Assembly (NCBI RefSeq): GCF_006345805.1
Contig: NW_021828335.1
Span: 1 to 9,403 of the forward strand
Reading direction: 5' to 3'
Length of the DNA stretch: 9,403 nucleotides
From: Octopus sinensis
Lineage: Eukaryota
This document shows, piece by piece, positions 1 to 9,403 of the stretch. The first letter of the stretch is position 1; each line of letters opens with the position of its first letter. The notes under the pieces are model-generated. The model saw only the letters and a list, made by a program, of their open reading frames with translations, had not been told where the DNA came from and did not search any database. The translations under genes were made by a program, and so were the position numbers.

Positions 1-37
1 GCTTCTAGTCCATCCAATTTTTTAACAGAGATGTGGA

Positions 38-38
<1 letters not shown>

Positions 39-81
<43 letters not shown>

Positions 82-104
82 TGTGTGTGTGTGTGTGTGC
101 GTGT
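39..104. repeat. (GT)n microsatellite
   Basis: About 32 GT units with a few interruptions (GC, GA). Confidence 0.97.
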
Positions 105-179
105 TCTGTTTGCGTACGAGATGTACGTGTGCATTAATGTTTGAATAGCTATCAAGAAACATAGTTACACAGCCACGCA

Positions 180-346
180 CATACGTATACACACACATGC
201 AAATATGTATATATATATATGTATATATATTATATATATATATATAAGATGTATATATATAATATATAATATATATATATATATTTGATATATATATATA
301 TATATATATTATGTATATATGTATATATATATATAATATATGTATG

Positions 347-383
<37 letters not shown>

Positions 384-915
384 GTATGTATATATATATA
401 TATATATGTATGTCTATATATATATGTATAGATATATATCTATATATATATATATATATATAATTTATATATATATATATGTGTTATATATATAGATATA
501 TATATGCATATATGTAGTATATATATATTATATCCATATCCATATAGATAAAATATATATGTGTATATATGTATATACATATATATATATATATATAGAT
601 ATAAATATAAATATATATATATGCATATATATATCTAAATATATATGCATATGTATATACTTGTCTATATGTGCATATATGTATATATGTATACATATAT
701 GTGTGTGTATATATATATATATGTATATATATGTACATTTATTTATCTTTATTCACATATATGTGTATGTATATGTACATATACAAGTATGTATGTATAT
801 GAATGTATATGTATGTTTGTGTGTATGTATACATATATATATACACACACATATACACGCACATATATATACACACATACATACATACATACATGTATAT
901 ATATGTGTGTGTGTG
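180..915. repeat. Compound (TA)n/(TATG)n/(CA)n low-complexity tract
   Basis: Near-continuous degenerate TA, TATG and CA repeats. This is the source of the Y/I/C/V/H/T-rich ORFs. Confidence 0.95.
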
Positions 916-1045
916 AAATATACACAAGTGCACATGTTGATAAATGGGTTGGCATGAAACTGAAACCCCCTGAGTCACTGCAACCCCTGATAAGAGATAT
1001 AAACACCATCCTTGATGTATAAATTTCCGTTTTGTTTTGTCTGTA

Positions 1046-1246
1046 GGAGGTGCGTGGCTTAGCGGTTAGGGTGTTCGGCTCGTGACGGTGAGGCTGTGTG
1101 CTCAATTCCTGGCAACAGCAACACCAATGCGATGCGTCCTCGCTCCAGTTTGCTCAGCTGGTAAAAATGGATTGTACCGGTAATTCAAAAGGGGCCAGCC
1201 CTGTCATATTCTGTGTCATGCTGAATCTCCCTGTGAAATACATGAA
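1046..1246 (+). mobile_element. tRNA-derived SINE (family A body), 5' part, interrupted by the MITE array
   Basis: Head GGAGGTGCG, A-box TGGCTTAGCGG (1055-1065), degenerate B-box TGCTCAATTCC (1099-1109). 1178-1246 aligns to the reverse complement of about 5938-6003 in the intact SINE of this window. Confidence 0.85.
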
Positions 1247-3185
1247 CCCTTTCATTACCAACCTAGCTGAAACCACCCCTGGTTTTGAGTACAAATGTCT
1301 TGTTTTCATGAGTTTTGAATTAAAATCTTCCACCAAACCTTAGTCACAATTTACGTTCCTAACACTAGCTTAATGATAACTAAGATATTTTACTAAATTC
1401 TTTGTTATATTTAAAATTAATTGAAAGAACACAGAGCATCTCAAAATAAATACGGTAACAAACGGTTAAATCACCATGATATTTTTAACCCTTTTGATAC
1501 CAAGCCACTAAACTGCCTCTGGCTCTGTAGTACAAATGCTTTTGTTTCATAAGTTCTGAATTAAAATCTTCCACCAAACCTTAGTCACAATTTATGTTCC
1601 TAACACTAGCTTAATGATAACTAAGTTATTTTACTAAATTCTTTGTTATATTTAAAATTAATTGAAAGAAACACAGAACATCTCAAAATAAATACGGTAA
1701 CAAAAGAGTTAAAGTCACCATGATATTTTTAACCCTTTTGATACCAAGCCAACTAAAACTGCCTCTGGCTCTGTAGTACAAGTGTCTTGTTTTCATAAGT
1801 TCTGAATTAAAATCTTCCACCAAACCTTAGTCACAATTTATGTTCCTAACACTAGCTGAATGATAACTAAGATACTTTACTAAATTCTTTGTTATATTTA
1901 AAATTAATTGAAAGAAACACAGAACATCTCAAAATAAATACGGTAACAAAAGAGTTAAAGTCACCATGATATTTTAAACCCTTTTGATACCAACCTGGTT
2001 GAAACCACCTCTGGCTCTGTAGTACAAATGTCTTGTTTTCATAAATTCTGAATTAAAATCTTCCACCAAACCTTAGTCACAATTTATGTTCCTACACTAG
2101 CTGAATGATAACTAAGATACTTTACTAAATTCTTTGTTATTTTAAATTAATTGAAAGAACACAGAACATCTCAAAATAAATACGGTAACAAAAGAGGTTA
2201 AAGTCACCATGATATTTTTAACCCTTTTGATACCAAGCCAACTAAAACTGCCTCTGGCTCTGTAGTACAAATGTCTTGTTTTCATAAGTTCTGAATTAAA
2301 ATCTTCCACCAAACCTTAGTCACAATTTATGTTCCTAACACTAGCTGAATGATAACTAAGATACTTTACTAAATTCTTTGTTATATTTAAAATTAATTGA
2401 AAGAAACACAGAACATCTCAAAATAAATACGGTAACAAAAGAGTTAAAGTCACCATGATATTTTTAACCCTTTTGATACCAAGCCAACTAAAACTGCCTC
2501 TGGCTCTGTAGTACAAATGTCTTGTTTTCATAAGTTCTGAATTAAAATCTTCCACCAAACCTTAGTCACAATTTATGTTCCTAACACTAGCTGAATGATA
2601 ACTAAGATATTTTACTAAATTCTTTGTTATATTTAAAATTAATTGAAAGAAACACAGAACATCTCAAAATAAATACGGTAACAAAAGAGTTAAAGTCACC
2701 ATGATATTTTATAAACCCTTTTGATACCAAGCCAACTAAAACTGCCTCTGGCTCTATAGTACAAATATCTTGTTTTCATAAGTTTTGAATTAAAATCTTC
2801 CTCCAAACCTTAGTCACAATTTATGTTCCTAACATGAGCTCTAATTATAACTAAGTTATTTTACTAAATTCTTTGTTATATTTAAAATTAATTGAAAGAA
2901 ACACAGAGCATCTCAACAGAAATATGGTAATAAAAGTGTTCAAGTCACCATGATATTTTATAAACCCTTTTGATACCAAGCCAACTAAAACTGCCTCTGG
3001 CTCTATAGTACAAATGTCTTGTTTTCATAAGTTTTGAATTAAAATCTTCCACCAAACTTTAATCACAATTTATGTTCCTAACACTAGCTTACGGATAACT
3101 AAGTTACTTTACTAAATTCTTTGCTATATTTAAAATTATGTGAAAGAACCACAGAACATCTCAAGAGAAATATGTTAACAAAAGG
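1247..3185. repeat. Tandem array A: 8 units of a ~222-bp piggyBac-type MITE plus 16-bp spacer
   Basis: Unit starts at 1247, 1489, 1733, 1979, 2222, 2468, 2716, 2965 (period 242-249). Typical ends are TTAA|CCCTTTTGATACC and CGGTAACAAAAGAG|TTAA. Spacer consensus AGTCACCATGATATTT. Confidence 0.92.
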
Positions 3186-3386
3186 TGTGAGTGAATATAT
3201 GTATATATATGTCCATATATATCTGCATATATATGTATATATGTATATATATATATCTATTTATTTATATACACATATATATGCATGTATGTAAGTTATA
3301 ATAATTTGACTTGTTGAAAATTCTGGTATCATACTTTGCTTTTATGCTTAACACAATTCATACAAATTATACATACATACACAAGC

Positions 3387-3418
<32 letters not shown>

Positions 3419-3470
3419 GCATGTGTGAATGTATATTTTGTGTGTGTGTATGTATATACATATATATATG
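3186..3470. repeat. (TA)n/(TG)n-rich low-complexity tract between the arrays
   Basis: TA and TATG runs at about 3195-3290 and 3370-3470, separated by AT-rich sequence. Confidence 0.8.
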
Positions 3471-4599
3471 AGAAAAGTTGAGTTCAATTATAACGTTTTT
3501 GCTCTAGTTATTAGATTTCTAATACAGATTCTTCATATCAGAATTGTAGCTTATTTAAAAAATATTAAGATTTGACAAGTATAAGGTGTGTTATGAGCAT
3601 TTATAGAATATGTATTCTATAGAAACTTAACTAATAATTAAAGATGGAGAATGTTTTATAAAATTTTAATCCATGTAACTAAAACTTTTAACTTTTAAAG
3701 TTTTGAATTAAATCCTGAGTCACCATTTATGTTCCTAAAACTAGCTTAATGATAACTAAGTTATTTTACTAAATTCTTTGTTATATTTAAAATGAAATTG
3801 AAAGAAACACAGAGCATCTCAACAGAAATATGGTAACAAAAGGGTTCAAGTCACCATGATATTTTTAACCCTTTTGTTACCAACCCGGCTGAAACCGGCT
3901 CAGGCTCTGTAGTACAAATGTCATGTTTACGTAAGTTCTGAATTAAAATCTTCCACCAAACCTTAGTCACAATTTATGTCCTAACACTAGCTGAATCATA
4001 ACTAGTTATTTTACTAAATTCTTTGATATATTTAAAATGAAATTGAAAGAAACACAGAGCATCTCAACAGAAATATGGTAACAAAAGGGTTCAAGTCACC
4101 ATGATTTTTTAACCCTTTTGTTACAACCGGCTGAAACCGGCTCAGGCTCTGTAGTACAAATGTCATGTTTACGTAAGTTCTGAATTAAAATCTTCCACCA
4201 AACCTTAGTCACAATTTATGTTCCTAACACTAGCTGAATCATAACTAAGTTATTTTACTAAATTCTTTGCTATATTTAAAATGAAATTGAAGAAACACAG
4301 AGCATCTCAACAGAAATATGGTAACAAAAGGGTTCAAGCACCATGATATTTTTAACCCTTTTGCTACCAACCCGGCTGAAACCGGTCAGGCTCTGAGTAC
4401 AAATGTCATGTTTACGTAAGTTCTGAATTAAAATCTTCCACCAAACCTTAGTCACAATTTATGTCCTAACACTAGCTGAATCATAACTAAGTTATTTTAC
4501 TAAATTCTTTGCTATATTTAAAATGAAATTGAAAGAAACACAGAGCATCTCAACAGAAATATGGTAACAAAAGGGTTCAAGTCACCATGATATTTTTAA

Positions 4600-4822
4600 C
4601 CCTTTTGTTACCAACCCGGCTGAAACCGGCTCAGGCTCTGTAGTACAAATGTCATGTTTACGTAAGTTCTGAATTAAAATCTTCCACCAAACCTTAGTCA
4701 CAATTTATGTTCCTAACACTAGCTGAATCATAACTAAGTTATTTTACTAAATTCTTTGATATATTTAAAATGAAATTGAAAGAAACACAGAGCATCTCAA
4801 CAGAAATATGGTAACAAAAGGG
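4600..4822. mobile_element. Representative non-autonomous piggyBac-type MITE monomer (223 bp)
   Basis: TTAA|CCCTTTTGTTACCA ... TGGTAACAAAAGGG|TTCA: a perfect 14-bp TIR with CCC...GGG termini at TTAA-type sites, the established piggyBac signature. No coding capacity. Confidence 0.85.
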
Positions 4823-5275
4823 TTCAAGTCACCATGATATTTTTAACCCTTTTGTTACCAACCCGGCTGAAACCGGCTCAGGCTCTGTAGTACAAATGTC
4901 ATGTTTACGTAAGTTCTGAATTAAAATCTTCACCAAACCTTAGTCACAATTTATGTTCCTAACACTAGCTGAATCAGAACTAAGTATTTTTACTAAATTC
5001 TTTGTATATTAAAATGAAATTGAAAGAACACAGAGCATCTCAACAGAAATATGGTAACAAAAGGGTTCAAGTCACCATGATATTTTTAACCCTTTTGCTA
5101 CCCAAACCCGGCTGAACCGGCTCAGGCTCTGTAGTACAATGTCATGTTTACGTAAGTTCTGAATTAAAATCTTCCACCAAACCTTAGTCACAATTTATGT
5201 TCCTAACACTAGCTGAATGATAACTAAGTTATTTTACTAAATTCTTTTAAAATAATTGAAAGAAATACAGTGTAT

Positions 5276-5692
5276 AGGTGCAGGAGTGGCTGTGTGGTAA
5301 GTAGCTTGCTTACCAGCCACATGGTTCTGGGTTCAGTCCCACTGCATGGCACCTTGGGCAAGTGTCTTCTACTATAGCCTCTGGCCGACCAAAGCCTTGT
5401 GAGTGGATTTGGTAGACGGAAACTGAAAGAAGCCTGTCGTATATATGTATATATATATGTGTGTGTGTGCATGTGTTTGTGTGTCTGTGTTTGTCCCCCC
5501 CCAGCATCGCTTGACAACCGATGCTGGTGTGTTTACATCCCCGTAACTTAGCGGTTCAGCAAAAGAGACTGATAGAATAAGTACTAGGCTTACAAAGAAT
5601 AAGTCCTGGGGGTTGATTTGCTCAATTAAAGGCGGTGCTCCAGCATAGCCGCAGTCAAATGACCGAAAGAAGAAAAAGAGTAAAAGAGAGTA
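5276..5692 (+). mobile_element. tRNA-derived SINE family B, copy 1 (full length, inside the last MITE unit)
   Basis: A-box TGGCTGTGTGG (5287-5297), B-box GGTTCAGTCCC (5330-5340), CORE-like CCTTGGGCAAGT motif, internal (TA)/(TG) tract, (GTAAAAGA)-type tail. Probable TSD AGTGTAT (5269-5275) / AGAGTAT (5693-5699). Confidence 0.9.
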
Positions 5693-5730
5693 AGAGTATC
5701 TTGAAACAAATACGGTAACGAAAGGCTTCA

Positions 5731-5774
5731 GGGTACACATGTCTGTGGGATACTCAACCACTTGCACCTTAATT
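5731..5774 (+). mobile_element. Continuation of the SINE interrupted at 1246 (3' remnant)
   Basis: GGGTACACATGTCTGTGGGATACTCAACCACTTGCACCTTAATT aligns to GGTACACGTGTCTGTGGAGTGCTCAGCCACTTACACGTTATT (reverse complement of about 5896-5937), directly after the TTAA of the intact copy. Confidence 0.8.
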
Positions 5775-5822
5775 ACCCTAATCGCTAAGCCACGTGCTTT
5801 CACAAACTTTTGTCTGGGCATT

Positions 5823-6204
5823 GGGGGTAGCACTCCGTCGGTTACGACGACAAGGGTTCCGGTTGATCCGAATCAACGGAACAGCCCGCTCGTGAAATAA
5901 CGTGTAAGTGGCTGAGCACTCCACAGACACGTGTACCTTAACGTAGTTCTCGGGATATTCAGCGTGACACAGAGAGTGACAAGGCGGCCCTTTGAAATAC
6001 AGGTACAACAGAAACAGGAAGTAAGAGTGAGAGAAAGTTGTGGTGAAAGAGTATAGCAGGGATCACCACCATCCCCTGCCGGAGCCTCGTGGAGCTTTAG
6101 GTGTTTTTGCTCAATAAACACTCACAACGCCCGGTCTGGGAATCGAAACCGCGGTCCTATGACTGCGAGTCCGCTGCCCTAACCACTGGGCCATTGCGCC
6201 TCCA
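5823..6204 (-). mobile_element. tRNA-derived SINE family A, full-length copy (3' member of a dimer)
   Basis: Minus-strand head TGGAGGCGCAA, A-box TGGCCCAGTGG (6183-6193), B-box GTTTCGATTCC (6139-6149), two hairpins at the 3' end. Confidence 0.9.
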
Positions 6205-6422
6205 CCCTTTGAAATACAGGTACAACAGAAACAGGAAGTAAGAGTGAGAGAAAGTTGTGGCAAAAGAGTACAGCAGGGATCACCACCATCCCCTGCCGGA
6301 GCCTCGTGGAGCTTTTAGGTGTTTTCACTCAATAAACACTCACAACGCCCGGTCTGGGAATCGAAACCGTGATCCTATGACCGCGAGTCCGCTGCCCTAA
6401 CCACTGGGCCATTGCGCCTCCA
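6205..6422 (-). mobile_element. SINE family A, 5' half (upstream member of the dimer)
   Basis: Direct repeat of 5988-6204 with 8 substitutions and 1 indel. A-box 6401-6411, B-box 6357-6367. The dimer is flanked by GTCTGGGCATT at 5812-5822 and 6424-6434. Confidence 0.9.
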
Positions 6423-6782
6423 GGTCTGGGCATTATTGATTTATACAAATGTGTAAGGATGAAGGCCAGACTTGAATAAGCATGACTATAGTGGCAACGG
6501 AGTTTGTCGAGTGATGAATAAATAAACACTCTGAGCTATATATATATGTGTGTGCATATTTAGTTTCGCTGAGAAGCTAGGCTGGGTGAGGGCCTCCTTT
6601 TTCAGTTAAGACTCTGTTTAAATACAAATGGATTTGAATTCACACGTGTGTTTATAGTATCGGTAATGTTATTATTATTTTATAATATTTATATTATTTG
6701 TGTCTTTTATTTATGTTTTCATACTCACGCTGTAATGTTATTCTTTAAATATTGGAAGAGATTCATACACCGCATGTCTAGT

Positions 6783-6825
6783 TATATATATATATATATA
6801 TATCTAATATTATATATATATATAT
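6783..6825. repeat. (TA)n microsatellite abutting a SINE head
   Basis: Interrupted TA run. Confidence 0.9.
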
Positions 6826-6980
6826 AGGCGCAGGAGTGGCTGTTTGGTAAGTAGCTTGCTAACCAACCACATGGTTCCGGGTTCAGTCCCACTGCGTGGT
6901 ATCTTGGGCAAGTGTCTTCTGCTATAGGCCCGGGCCGACCAATGCCTTGTGAGTGGATTTGGTAGACGGAAACTGAAAGA
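6826..6980 (+). mobile_element. SINE family B, copy 2 (5' module only)
   Basis: AGGCGCAGGAG head through GGAAACTGAAAGA, homologous to 5276-5430 and to the start of copy 3. Confidence 0.9.
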
Positions 6981-7063
6981 CTTATTCTTTGTAAGCCCAG
7001 TACTTATTCTATCGGTCTCTTTTGCCGAACCGCTAAGTGACAGGGACGTAATCACACCAGCAT
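6979..7063 (-). mobile_element. Inverted internal fragment of the SINE family B 3' module
   Basis: Reverse complement of 7589-7675 with few differences. Confidence 0.9.
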
Positions 7064-7226
7064 ATTACAGACTTATTTCTACATGACCAGAAAGTTGAAC
7101 TGTGAAGTTTTATGCTCCTTTTCTCTTCTCTTCTCTTCATTTCTTTATTCCTTTTCTCCTGTTCTCTATGCTGTCATTTCATTAATCTGAACCTTTCTCA
7201 TTTTCCCTATTTGTCTCTGATGACAG

Positions 7227-7244
7227 AATATCCCAGAAACAGCT
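7227..7244 (+). other. Candidate 18-nt microexon (unverified)
   Basis: Long pyrimidine tract with no AG from 7108 to 7224, then CAG|AATATCCCAGAAACAGCT|GTAAG. Length is a multiple of 3 with no stop in any frame. Confidence 0.3.
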
Positions 7245-7350
7245 GTAAGGCTTTGAATTTTTTTTTTCCAATAATAATATTGTATACAACTTGAGATGTT
7301 TGCCTTGCCTTAATGTTTGTTGTCCTCTTTAACAATTTATATATATATAT

Positions 7351-7716
7351 AGGCGCAGGAGTGGCTGTGTGGTAAGTAGCTTGCTAACCAACCACATGGT
7401 TCCGGTTCAGTCCCACTGCGTGGCATCTTGGGCAAGTGTCTTCGCTATAGCCCCGGCCGACCAATGCCTTGTGAGTGGATTTGGTAGACGGAAACTGAAA
7501 AGAAGCCCGTCGTATATATGTATATATATATATATGTATGGTGTGTTTGTGTGTCTGTGTTTGTCCCCCTAGCATTGCTTGACAACCGATGCTGGTGTGT
7601 TTACGTCCCCGTCACTTAGCGGTTCGGCAAAAAGAGACCGATAGAATAAGTACTGGGCTTACAAAAGAATAAGTCCCGGGGTCGATTTGCTCGACTAAAA
7701 GGCAGTGCTCCAGCAT
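7351..7716 (+). mobile_element. SINE family B, copy 3 (lacks the 3' tail)
   Basis: Colinear with copy 1 from the head to GTGCTCCAGCAT. A and B boxes present; preceded by (TA)n. Confidence 0.92.
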
Positions 7717-7992
7717 ACTTTTCTTTCCCTGTTATCCCCCACAGCATTTACATAACCGTTCATTCAGTACCTCTTACCATCGCCCCCCCCTGCTACTAAC
7801 CAGCGTTCTCTCCTCTCCCTGCATCGTGTACTCTGTTGCTATCCACTTGTTGTTCTTTCTGAGTATGACACATCCTTATTGCTGTCTTCTGAAGCTTCTC
7901 AGGTTGCTTTATATACAGCCTCTTACCAATAACCATTGTCTAGCTGTTTTTTTCTTTTAAATGCAAATACACTTGTCCTATCCTTGTCGATT

Positions 7993-8053
7993 TATAAGTG
8001 TGTATGCATGTCTGTTATTATGTGAGCGAATGTATGTATGTAGGTATGTGCGA

Positions 8054-8090
<37 letters not shown>

Positions 8091-8172
8091 GTATGTATAT
8101 TGGATATAAGTATAAATACTAGTGTATATATAAGTATGTGTGTATTTGTATGTTTGTTCATATATACATTTG
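7993..8172. repeat. (TA)n/(TATG)n low-complexity tract
   Basis: Pure TA run at about 8055-8083 within degenerate TATG/TG repeats. Confidence 0.9.
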
Positions 8173-8177
8173 TGTGA

Positions 8178-8254
8178 CTCCTCTCTCTCCCCCACGCTCT
8201 CTCTTTCTCTCTCTCTTTTTCTCTCCCTCTCTTTCTCTCTCTCTCTCTCTTTCT
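8178..8254. repeat. (CT)n microsatellite
   Basis: Degenerate CT run; source of the RERE and SLSL ORFs. Confidence 0.92.
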
Positions 8255-8369
8255 AACATCATGCTCTTTTCGTTCACACTCTCGCACCCTGTCATGCTTG
8301 CCTTGAAACGAACAAAAACAAATGTATTTGAGAAAGCTCTTCGGCCTAGTGAGAGACAAGGCAACTCTT

Positions 8370-8545
8370 CTAGTGTTGGTGCCATGATACAATGTAACCT
8401 GTACACACTGTACAGTGGTTGGCGTTAGGAAGGTCACGGAGCCAGAGAATGCATATCAAAGCAAATACTGGAGCATCATGACTTGTCAGATTCTAAACCA
8501 CTCAATGTATGTCAGTATGGGTCCAGAACATTAAATGGTTTTGAT
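8370..8545 (+). mobile_element. Probable degraded 3' part of an older, third SINE-like repeat
   Basis: TGTTGGTGCCA...AGTGGTTGGCGTTAGGAAGG...CATTAAATG resembles an octopus repeat ending in (GAT)n as I recall it. There is no second copy in the window to confirm. Confidence 0.4.
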
Positions 8546-8550
8546 TATAT

Positions 8551-8965
8551 TCTCTCTTACTCTTTTTACTCTTTTACTTGTTTCAGTCATTTGACTGCGG
8601 CCATGCTGGAGCACCGCCTTTAGTCAAGCAAATTGACCCCGGGACTTATTCTTTGTAAGCCCAGTACTTATACTATCGGTCTCTTTTGCCGAACCGCTAA
8701 GTGACGGGGACGTAAACACACACAGGGCATCGGTTGTCAAGCAATGCTAGGGGGACAAACACAGACACACACACACATACATATATATATATACATATAT
8801 ACGACAGGCTTCTTTCAGTTTCCGTCTACCAAATCCACTCACAAGGCATTGGTCATCCTGAGGCTATAGCAGAAGACACTTGCCCAAGATGCCACGCAGT
8901 GGGATTGAACCCAGAACCATGTGGTTGGTTAGCAAGCTACTTACCACACACCCACTCCTGCGCCT
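8551..8965 (-). mobile_element. SINE family B, copy 4 (full length)
   Basis: Reverse complement of copies 1 and 3, with tail (TCTTTTAC)n at 8551-8580, B-box at 8901-8911 and head ending at 8965. Confidence 0.92.
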
Positions 8966-8967
8966 AT

Positions 8968-8986
8968 AGATGATGATGATGATGAT
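8968..8986. repeat. (GAT)n microsatellite
   Basis: About six GAT units. Confidence 0.9.
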
Positions 8987-9027
8987 GGCAAATATTCTGA
9001 GAATGGATTTTTGTCTCCCCCCCCATC

Positions 9028-9198
9028 CAGGGGCATAGCTAGGGTAAATGGCACCCAGGACAAGCATCAAAATTGTGCCCCGTCTCCAACAAAATGTGGT
9101 AACTCGCATACAAATGGCTCAATGAGAAAAATTGCGCCTCCCCTCAAAGTGGCGCCCAGGGCATGTGCCCTGCATTCCCCACCCTAGCTACACCCCTG
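9028..9198. mobile_element. 171-bp MITE with 18-bp TIRs, hAT-like
   Basis: CAGGGGCATAGCTAGGGT (9028-9045) versus ACCCTAGCTACACCCCTG (9181-9198): 16/18 match, both mismatches at one decayed CpG. CAG...CTG termini. The 8-bp flanks CCCCCATC and CCCCTCAC match only 5/8. Confidence 0.8.
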
Positions 9199-9321
9199 CC
9201 CCTCACCGCTCACTCTGTGTCTCTTTCATTTTCTTCAGCTTCACCCCAGTCACTCTTACCCTACCCCCTATAATGCTAGTAGTCATGGAGCTTGGCTGCA
9301 GTAAGAAACCCCGGTTTTCTG

Positions 9322-9403
9322 TGTCTGTGCGTATGTGTGTGTGTGAATGTGTGTGTGTATGTACGTGCATGTCTTTAATGAATGCTGTGTATATATGTTT
9401 GTA
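9322..9403. repeat. (GT)n/(GTAT)n degenerate microsatellite
   Basis: GT-rich tract running to the window end. Confidence 0.8.

Follow-up and report, generated by a model that had tools for sequence, protein, structure and literature searches.

To our knowledge, the satellite DNA of cephalopods has hardly been described. In a recent annotation of the Octopus vulgaris genome, repeats make up about 66% of the sequence. Here, we describe a tandem array in Octopus sinensis, found on contig NW_021828335.1; the stretch analyzed, positions 1 to 9,403 of the forward strand (9,403 nucleotides), is referred to below as the window. The array extends from 1247 to 5726 and consists of 15 head-to-tail units of about 245 bp each. 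Our results support the view that the repeated sequence is a whole element that targets TTAA and has CCC...GGG ends, i.e., a MITE (miniature inverted-repeat transposable element) of the piggyBac type. The array lies inside a host repeat resembling a short interspersed nuclear element (SINE) and falls into two sub-arrays, A and B, separated by an interruption (Table 1). A literature search turned up no account of the octopus family, nor of any MITE-derived array in an octopus.

Table 1. Features of the array and its insertion site (window coordinates)
Feature	Position	Strand	Remarks
Host SINE-like repeat, left part	1040..1242	+	1172-1241 80% identical to minus strand 6008-5943; collinear with five uninterrupted paralogues
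Target-site duplication, left copy TGAA	1243..1246	.	One mismatch from TTAA; aligns to TTAA in 5/5 empty paralogues
Sub-array A	1247..3185	+	8 units, A1-A8; first base is base 1 of a 5' inverted repeat, last base the end of a 3' inverted repeat
Interruption between sub-arrays	3186..3697	.	512 bp; (TA)n/(TG)n microsatellites and AT-rich sequence
Sub-array B	3698..5270	+	Partial B0 3698-3868, complete B1-B5 3869-5089, 5' part of B6 5090-5270
Representative complete element, unit B4	4600..4822	+	223 bp; 5' inverted repeat CCCTTTTGTTACCA 4600-4613, 3' inverted repeat TGGTAACAAAAGGG 4809-4822
Representative linker	4823..4846	+	TTCA + AGTCACCATGATATTT + TTAA; in A units TTAA + identical 16 bp + TTAA
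SINE inside B6	5273..5696	+	424-bp Octopus SINE, inserted after array formation
B6, 3' remainder	5697..5726	+	Terminal 3' inverted repeat CGGTAACGAAAGGC at 5713-5726
Target-site duplication, right copy TTCA	5727..5730	.	One mismatch from TTAA; sole extra segment relative to empty paralogues when the flanks are joined
Host repeat, right part (GGGTACACATGTCTGTGG...)	5731..5775	+	81% identical to minus strand 5937-5895
Uninterrupted host-repeat paralogue (empty site)	5891..6012	-	TTAA at 5938-5941

The repeat unit and the layout of the array

Units were placed by BLAST with the 247-bp unit 4600-4846 as the query and then with an nhmmer profile of 12 full units. The placement bears out an earlier note on this DNA, made from the letters alone, which had counted 15 tandem units of about 245 bp between the same outer coordinates; positions 1247 and 5726 are indeed where the first 5' inverted repeat begins and the last 3' inverted repeat stops. 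TRF reports two arrays, one at 1288-3184 (period 246, 7.7 copies, 94% matches) and one at 3714-5247 (period 243, 6.3 copies, 96%). The units A1 to A8 start at 1247, 1489, 1733, 1979, 2222, 2468, 2716, and 2965, and the last base of A8, 3185, coincides with the outer end of its 3' inverted repeat. With 15 units repeated head to tail, the array has the arrangement expected of a satellite, a term that is generous for about 3.7 kb of units and the one array locus seen.

Each full unit comprises an element and a linker. The same note had described an element of about 222 bp bounded by inverted repeats of 13 to 14 bp and TTAA-like tetranucleotides, with a 16-bp spacer and both repeats still legible in every full monomer. 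This description stands except for the length, which is 223 bp in the B units. The 14-bp inverted repeats, CCCTTTTGTTACCA and TGGTAACAAAAGGG, are perfect in B1, B4, and B5 and match at 11 of 14 positions in the A units. When up to two mismatches are allowed, the window contains 27 occurrences of the inverted-repeat motif, where 0.07 would be expected. Moreover, an inverted repeat of 14 nt within one monomer exceeds anything found in 500 shuffles (maximum, 11), and the two repeats of B4 pair in a DNA fold (z = -3.3). The linker, TT(A/C)A + AGTCACCATGATATTT + TTAA, is invariant at all 13 internal junctions.

The element is non-coding and, at 223 bp, well under the 600 bp that bounds a MITE; it has both inverted repeats and a target-site duplication. 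The longest open frame over all units is 61 amino acids. A protein search with the concatenated open frames of an A and a B monomer gave nothing at E <= 0.001, and the two longest open reading frames of the window were not on record in look-ups. A 22-nt core of the element had no match in exact-pattern scans of metagenome and prokaryote-genome collections. The pattern of TTAA plus inverted repeat matched 33 and 12 times in these collections, always by chance or in bacterial sequence, and none of these matches had a matching 3' repeat within 8 kb. No function is indicated, and the array behaves as selfish or neutral repetitive DNA.

Two segments break the regularity of the array. The 512-bp interruption contains two TRF rows (3195-3282 and 3387-3418), its BLAST matches are to microsatellites only, and nhmmer finds no significant match upstream of 3698 that would carry the array through it. 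Its last part, from about 3604 to 3697, aligns weakly to a unit end, linker, and unit start, with 4 of 300 shuffles reaching that score, and bears a weak resemblance to a decayed copy of that junction. The second segment is the SINE at 5273-5696, which is 89-90% identical to two other SINE copies of the window (7348-7717 and 8968-8554). Beyond it, the remainder of B6 is recovered by nhmmer as a match of 5689-5736 to model positions 185-232 (E = 0.003). Upstream of the array, a 700-bp block of degenerate (AT)n/(TG)n microsatellite (203-904) is akin to the tracts within the interruption.

A single TTAA insertion, its age, and its assembly

Further octopod sequence was located through protein matches. 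Peptides of the window SINE matched predicted proteins of O. vulgaris, O. bimaculoides, and Argonauta hians, which also assigns the window to an octopod, and a zinc-finger protein search, which returned mostly vertebrate zinc fingers, added two usable Octopus proteins. The resulting sample comprises six Octopus loci (127.6 kb from three Octopus species) and one Argonauta locus (20 kb), about 148 kb in total.

The two flanks of the array are parts of one host repeat. When they are joined with one tetranucleotide kept, 95 of 115 positions (82.6%) agree with the uninterrupted paralogue of the window, the junction falls on its TTAA, and the alignment score of each flank beats 1000 of 1000 shuffles. 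The host repeat runs uninterrupted across this point in four further copies, from loci of O. sinensis and O. vulgaris, with the consensus ...GAGAACTACG TTAA GGGTACACGTG... (fuller right side, GGGTACACGTGTCTGTGG...). At the empty site, the five paralogues have ...ACG TTAA GGGTACAC...; the sequence of the filled site is ...ATACA TGAA (1247-5726) TTCA GGGTACACATG.... The comparison shows the whole array to be one insertion at a single TTAA inside the SINE-like repeat. The flanking TGAA and TTCA are the duplicated TTAA, each copy having acquired one substitution since. Duplication of a 4-bp TTAA target is also indicated by the internal junctions of the array and by a dispersed copy in O. vulgaris (see below). 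The host repeat and its in-window paralogue stand head to head about 160 bp apart, forming a 43-bp inverted repeat (5732-5774 and 5895-5937, 81% identity).

The core A units are 95-99% identical to one another and B1 to B5 98-99%, whereas A and B units share 88-91% identity; the edge units A1, A7, A8, and B6 are 85-92% identical, those of sub-array A 86-92%. Divergence within the family is star-like, in that A, B, and the dispersed O. vulgaris copies all lie about 8-12% apart, and yet A and B share the linker. Since the distance between A and B equals that to the dispersed copies while the linker is shared, the tandem structure dates from about the time of the family's spread, and the two blocks appear to have been homogenized separately from then on. 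The insertion itself is old, as judged from the mutated target-site copies, the diverged edge units, the difference of about 10% between A and B, the two to three changes carried by the terminal repeats, the SINE in the last unit, and the 512-bp split between A and B. The array had previously been called young; this fits the B block, with its 98-99% identity, but not the insertion, whose TTAA copies have mutated, whose edge units have fallen to 85-92% identity, and whose last unit has received a SINE.

The near-identity of the B units raises the question of whether the array, or its length, is an artefact of the assembly. Compared with their own consensus, B1 to B5 (3869-5089) each show two to three substitutions and three to four single-base deletions and not a single insertion. 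Length differences made up of deletions only, among units 98-99% identical, are typical of long-read consensus errors; the pattern resembles such error, and the true identity between these units may be even higher. In contrast, the A units have distinct substitution patterns, the variants grade toward both edges, an old SINE insertion and a decayed interruption lie within the array, and the array ends join the host repeat cleanly. An artefact would not yield such a structure. We therefore regard an assembly origin as very unlikely, and doubt is confined to the number of B units.

Related copies in Octopus and the superfamily of the element

If the unit is a MITE, it should also exist outside the array, and the lack of dispersed copies flanked by TTAA had been named in advance as an observation that would refute a MITE. 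One such copy was found, which shows the family to be dispersed. In O. vulgaris (OX597827.1, about 76.09 Mb), at 16260-16481 of the sampled locus L046, a complete family copy reads TTAA-CCCTTTCAATACCA...TGGTAATGAAAGGG-TTAA, with a perfect TTAA on either side. A second copy follows 31 bp downstream, across an unrelated 23-bp linker; it begins TTAA-CCCTTTTGATACCA... and is truncated near position 209. Both share 88-93% identity with the units of the window and 92% with each other. In the 127.6 kb of Octopus sequence, this one further locus, with its two copies, carries the family, and the family was not found in the 20 kb of Argonauta.

Other families with CCCTTT ends are present in the same sample. 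A 221-bp sibling MITE of O. sinensis (L048, CM016872.1, 8741-8969) reads TTAA-CCCTTTAGTGTTC...GCTAAAGGG-TTAA. At the orthologous O. vulgaris position (L049, OX597827.1, about 8985-8993) it is exactly absent, and a single TTAA is left (...GGATGGT TTAA ACTATCC...). The difference reflects either a new insertion or a precise excision after the species split. In both cases, this presence/absence at TTAA indicates that piggyBac-type events have taken place in Octopus since O. sinensis and O. vulgaris diverged. A further sibling family, at O. vulgaris locus L051 (OX597836.1; TTAA-CCCATTTACTGCA...TGCAGTGAAAGGG-TTAA), forms a head-to-tail pair whose members, at 11404-11651 and about 11066-11293, lie 110 bp apart. 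Head-to-tail pairs thus recur with different linkers.

The dispersed and sibling copies bear on a plain alternative, namely that the array is an ordinary satellite without any transposon and that a 14-bp palindromic pair arose within the monomer by chance. Dyad symmetries are frequent in satellites, and a single array is visible in the window. However, the array is bounded exactly at the outer ends of its inverted repeats and within a duplicated TTAA, a complete copy flanked by TTAA sits at an unrelated O. vulgaris locus, and the sibling CCCTTT family shows an exact presence/absence at TTAA. On this evidence, an ordinary satellite is scarcely credible.

Assignment to piggyBac depends on the element ends. 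The hallmarks of this superfamily are a TTAA duplication, inverted repeats of 12-19 bp, and a CC[C/T]T terminal motif, and autonomous coral piggyBacs have CCCTTT ends (PMC2872659; PMC5381638). The octopus element has such a motif at its termini, and its inverted repeats pair at 14 of 14 positions in B units. Six piggyBac families are listed as recently active in a new annotation of O. vulgaris, which does not give their end sequences (PMC13282606). The earlier note had held that TTAA targets together with CCC...GGG termini define piggyBac. TTAA by itself is insufficient, since the Kolobok/T2-MITEs likewise duplicate TTAA (PMC6004289); it is the CC[C/T]T termini that discriminate (PMC2872659). 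With that amendment, the proposed identity as a piggyBac-type MITE is supported by the CCC...GGG termini, the single-TTAA insertion, and the TTAA-flanked O. vulgaris copy.

The element could, in principle, be a MITE mobilized by the transposase of another superfamily that targets TTAA or TA, either Kolobok/T2 or Tc1/mariner, the latter with a TA duplication and A...T ends. Kolobok shares the TTAA duplication (PMC6004289) and no cognate transposase was found, the seven octopod loci examined containing no transposase open reading frame. Moreover, a TA duplication with ACCC...GGGT ends gives an identical string at TTAA, which counts against the piggyBac assignment. A Kolobok/T2-MITE can nonetheless be rejected, because its ends are AGGRR/AG (PMC6004289) and those of the octopus element are CCCTTT...AAAGGG, as in the autonomous coral piggyBacs. 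Likewise, a Tc1/mariner MITE should have variable neighbors around its TA, but a T before and an A after the central TA are present at all seven independent element ends, which indicates a 4-bp TTAA target. A superfamily other than piggyBac thus appears most improbable.

Three observations on locus L051 concern the element ends. The inverted repeat of its sibling pair shares its first 12 nt (CCCTTTCACTGC) with that of coral CMITE family VI (CCCTTTCACTGCCA, PMC2872659). At 11832-11849 of the same locus lies an element end, GGTCACAAAAGGG-TTAA (L051 end CCCTTTTGTGACCA), whose inverted repeat agrees at 13 of 14 positions with that of the window family. A possible opposite end of this element, TTAACCCTCTTGGGAC, lies 2.3 kb away, at 9543. 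The element could be a relative that uses the window family's transposase; internal similarity of the window family to this element, or to the other CCCTTT families, was not significant.

History of the array and its surroundings

We consider it likely that the locus holds a 223-bp non-autonomous piggyBac-type MITE in tandem array and had the following history. The family would have been mobilized in trans by a piggyBac transposase, and two copies would have come to lie head to tail with 16 bp and two TTAAs between them. This would have happened at some other locus, either by insertion into neighboring TTAAs or by a local duplication. The dimer, or a short array grown from it, would then have reached the present site, most likely by cut-and-paste as a composite moved from its outermost inverted repeats; alternatively, an array elsewhere may have converted a resident solo copy ectopically. 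Out-of-register exchange would have expanded the array to at least 15 units and kept homogenizing blocks A and B. Finally, the edges, the target-site copies, and the middle would have decayed, with a microsatellite and AT-rich stretch splitting the array and a SINE landing in the last unit.

The linker is central to this history. The right flank shares 6 to 7 of its 16 positions and the left flank 2; neither in the flanks nor in the empty site does the similarity go beyond that of shuffled linkers (P = 0.18-0.75). Derivation of the linker from the local flanks, the empty site, or the interior of the element is unsupported. Nor does any host-repeat paralogue have a second TTAA 16 bp away. Two insertions made here at neighboring TTAAs can be rejected, since the joined flanks would then lack 20 bp relative to the paralogues, and nothing is missing. 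The linker is therefore foreign to the present site, and the dimer would have been made elsewhere; the shared linker and the star-like divergence together place dimer formation near the family's period of activity. The suggestion that the array was seeded where it now lies is not borne out, as the 16-bp linker matches neither flank nor empty site.

The simplest history would nevertheless be an origin in situ, in which one MITE inserted at this TTAA and the array and linker arose by slippage or by tandem duplication of the element plus its flank, without any structure of several units having moved. This is the mechanism favored for the coral CMITE arrays, where elements and gaps are both conserved (PMC2872659), and a single founding insertion would account for the one target-site duplication that bounds the array. 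But such an origin predicts a linker built from the flank, and the observed one matches no better than shuffles; moreover, the last unit runs straight into the host repeat with no linker copy. We judge an origin in situ unlikely, although less so than the other alternatives above.

More tentatively, and with rather less confidence than we place in the history as a whole, we propose that the array itself behaved as a composite transposon, a dimer or short array made elsewhere having been excised by piggyBac transposase at the outermost inverted repeats and inserted into the present TTAA. If so, a proto-satellite in Octopus would spread between loci by transposition and, once landed, would each time lengthen by unequal exchange. 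A composite move and ectopic conversion both predict further arrays with the identical 16-bp linker; the composite move predicts several, each with its own TTAA duplication. Finding the identical linker at other TTAA sites would mean that a cut-and-paste transposase moves whole arrays, which would be one concrete route of satellite dispersal.

Several points weigh against the history that we favor. No transposase-encoding element with matching ends (CCCTTTTGTTACC-type; CCCTTTTG(T/A)TACC) was found in the 148 kb of octopod DNA. The outer target-site copies are each one base off TTAA, and the copy number in the near-identical B block could be mis-assembled. The birth of the dimer elsewhere and its move as a composite would both follow from a negative result, the failure of the linker to match the local flanks. 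Furthermore, the linker 16-mer is absent from all other sequence compared, and no second array with an identical linker, and hence no donor or sister locus, was found there. Finally, L046 is the sole other family locus seen in the 127.6 kb of Octopus.

Arrays of this kind have already been described, and the octopus family adds a mollusc case. The closest are the coral CMITEs of Acropora millepora and A. palmata (Wang et al. 2010, PMC2872659), which are small, non-coding, TTAA-flanked, piggyBac-linked elements with CCCTTT inverted repeats of 13-14 bp. As in Octopus, full-size elements stand in tandem, and the gaps of some arrays are conserved like the elements. However, the CMITEs belong to another phylum, are about 100 bp long, have an internal core conserved between families, and share no sequence similarity with the octopus element beyond CCCTTT. 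Moreover, the coral arrays were seen on short shotgun reads and ascribed to replication slippage without an empty-site analysis, whereas the octopus array, with all 15 of its units, is shown to lie in one TTAA and has a linker foreign to the site.

The dimers of hobo, P element, and R1 in Drosophila (McGurk & Barbash 2018, PMC5932611) also have complete transposons as units and target-site sequence at the junction, and transposon dimers are known to expand by unequal exchange (PMC5932611). In Drosophila, however, both insertions occur at one target site and the junction is a single duplication, whereas the octopus junction, TTAA-16 bp-TTAA, corresponds to two neighboring sites or a duplicated flank, and the octopus dimer was probably not made at the present locus of the array.

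Links between MITEs and satellites have been reviewed for Xenopus and bivalves (PMC12628747; PMC3879986). In Xenopus, MITEs yield or carry tandem arrays, as seen for Xmix/Xstir, a T2-MITE of Kolobok, and miDNA4, a Tc1/mariner MITE with a satellite (PMC6004289, PMC12628747). Xmix targets TTAA, and the composite structures of MITE plus array are able to transpose. The termini are AGGRR, of another superfamily, and what is repeated is an internal segment enclosed by a single pair of inverted repeats; the octopus unit holds both repeats. Among molluscs, the bivalve element DTC84 and related MITEs containing tandem repeats are tied to short tandem arrays and satellite DNAs (PMC3879986), but DTC84 has a central block of core repeats between unique arms, does not repeat the whole element, and is not of the TTAA/piggyBac type. 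An internal-core origin of the Xstir, miDNA4, or DTC84 type can be rejected for the octopus array, whose units carry both inverted repeats and the linker.

The phenomenon is thus known from corals, Drosophila, and Xenopus, and the octopus case leaves the understanding of such arrays unchanged. One aspect is possibly new, namely that a whole array was transposed. What the locus offers is a legible case of a DNA transposon becoming tandem-repeat DNA, with the units, linker, target-site copies, and empty site contained in one 9.4-kb window.

A tRNA scan and an Rfam scan of the whole window returned nothing. Four copies or fragments of an abundant octopus SINE lie at 5273-5696, 6823-7063, 7348-7717, and 8554-8968 and are mutually 89-92% identical, the second of them being rearranged, with its 3' part inverted. 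On the minus strand, a second tRNA-like SINE occurs as a tandem duplicate at 5988-6204 and 6205-6422, with 96% identity between the copies.

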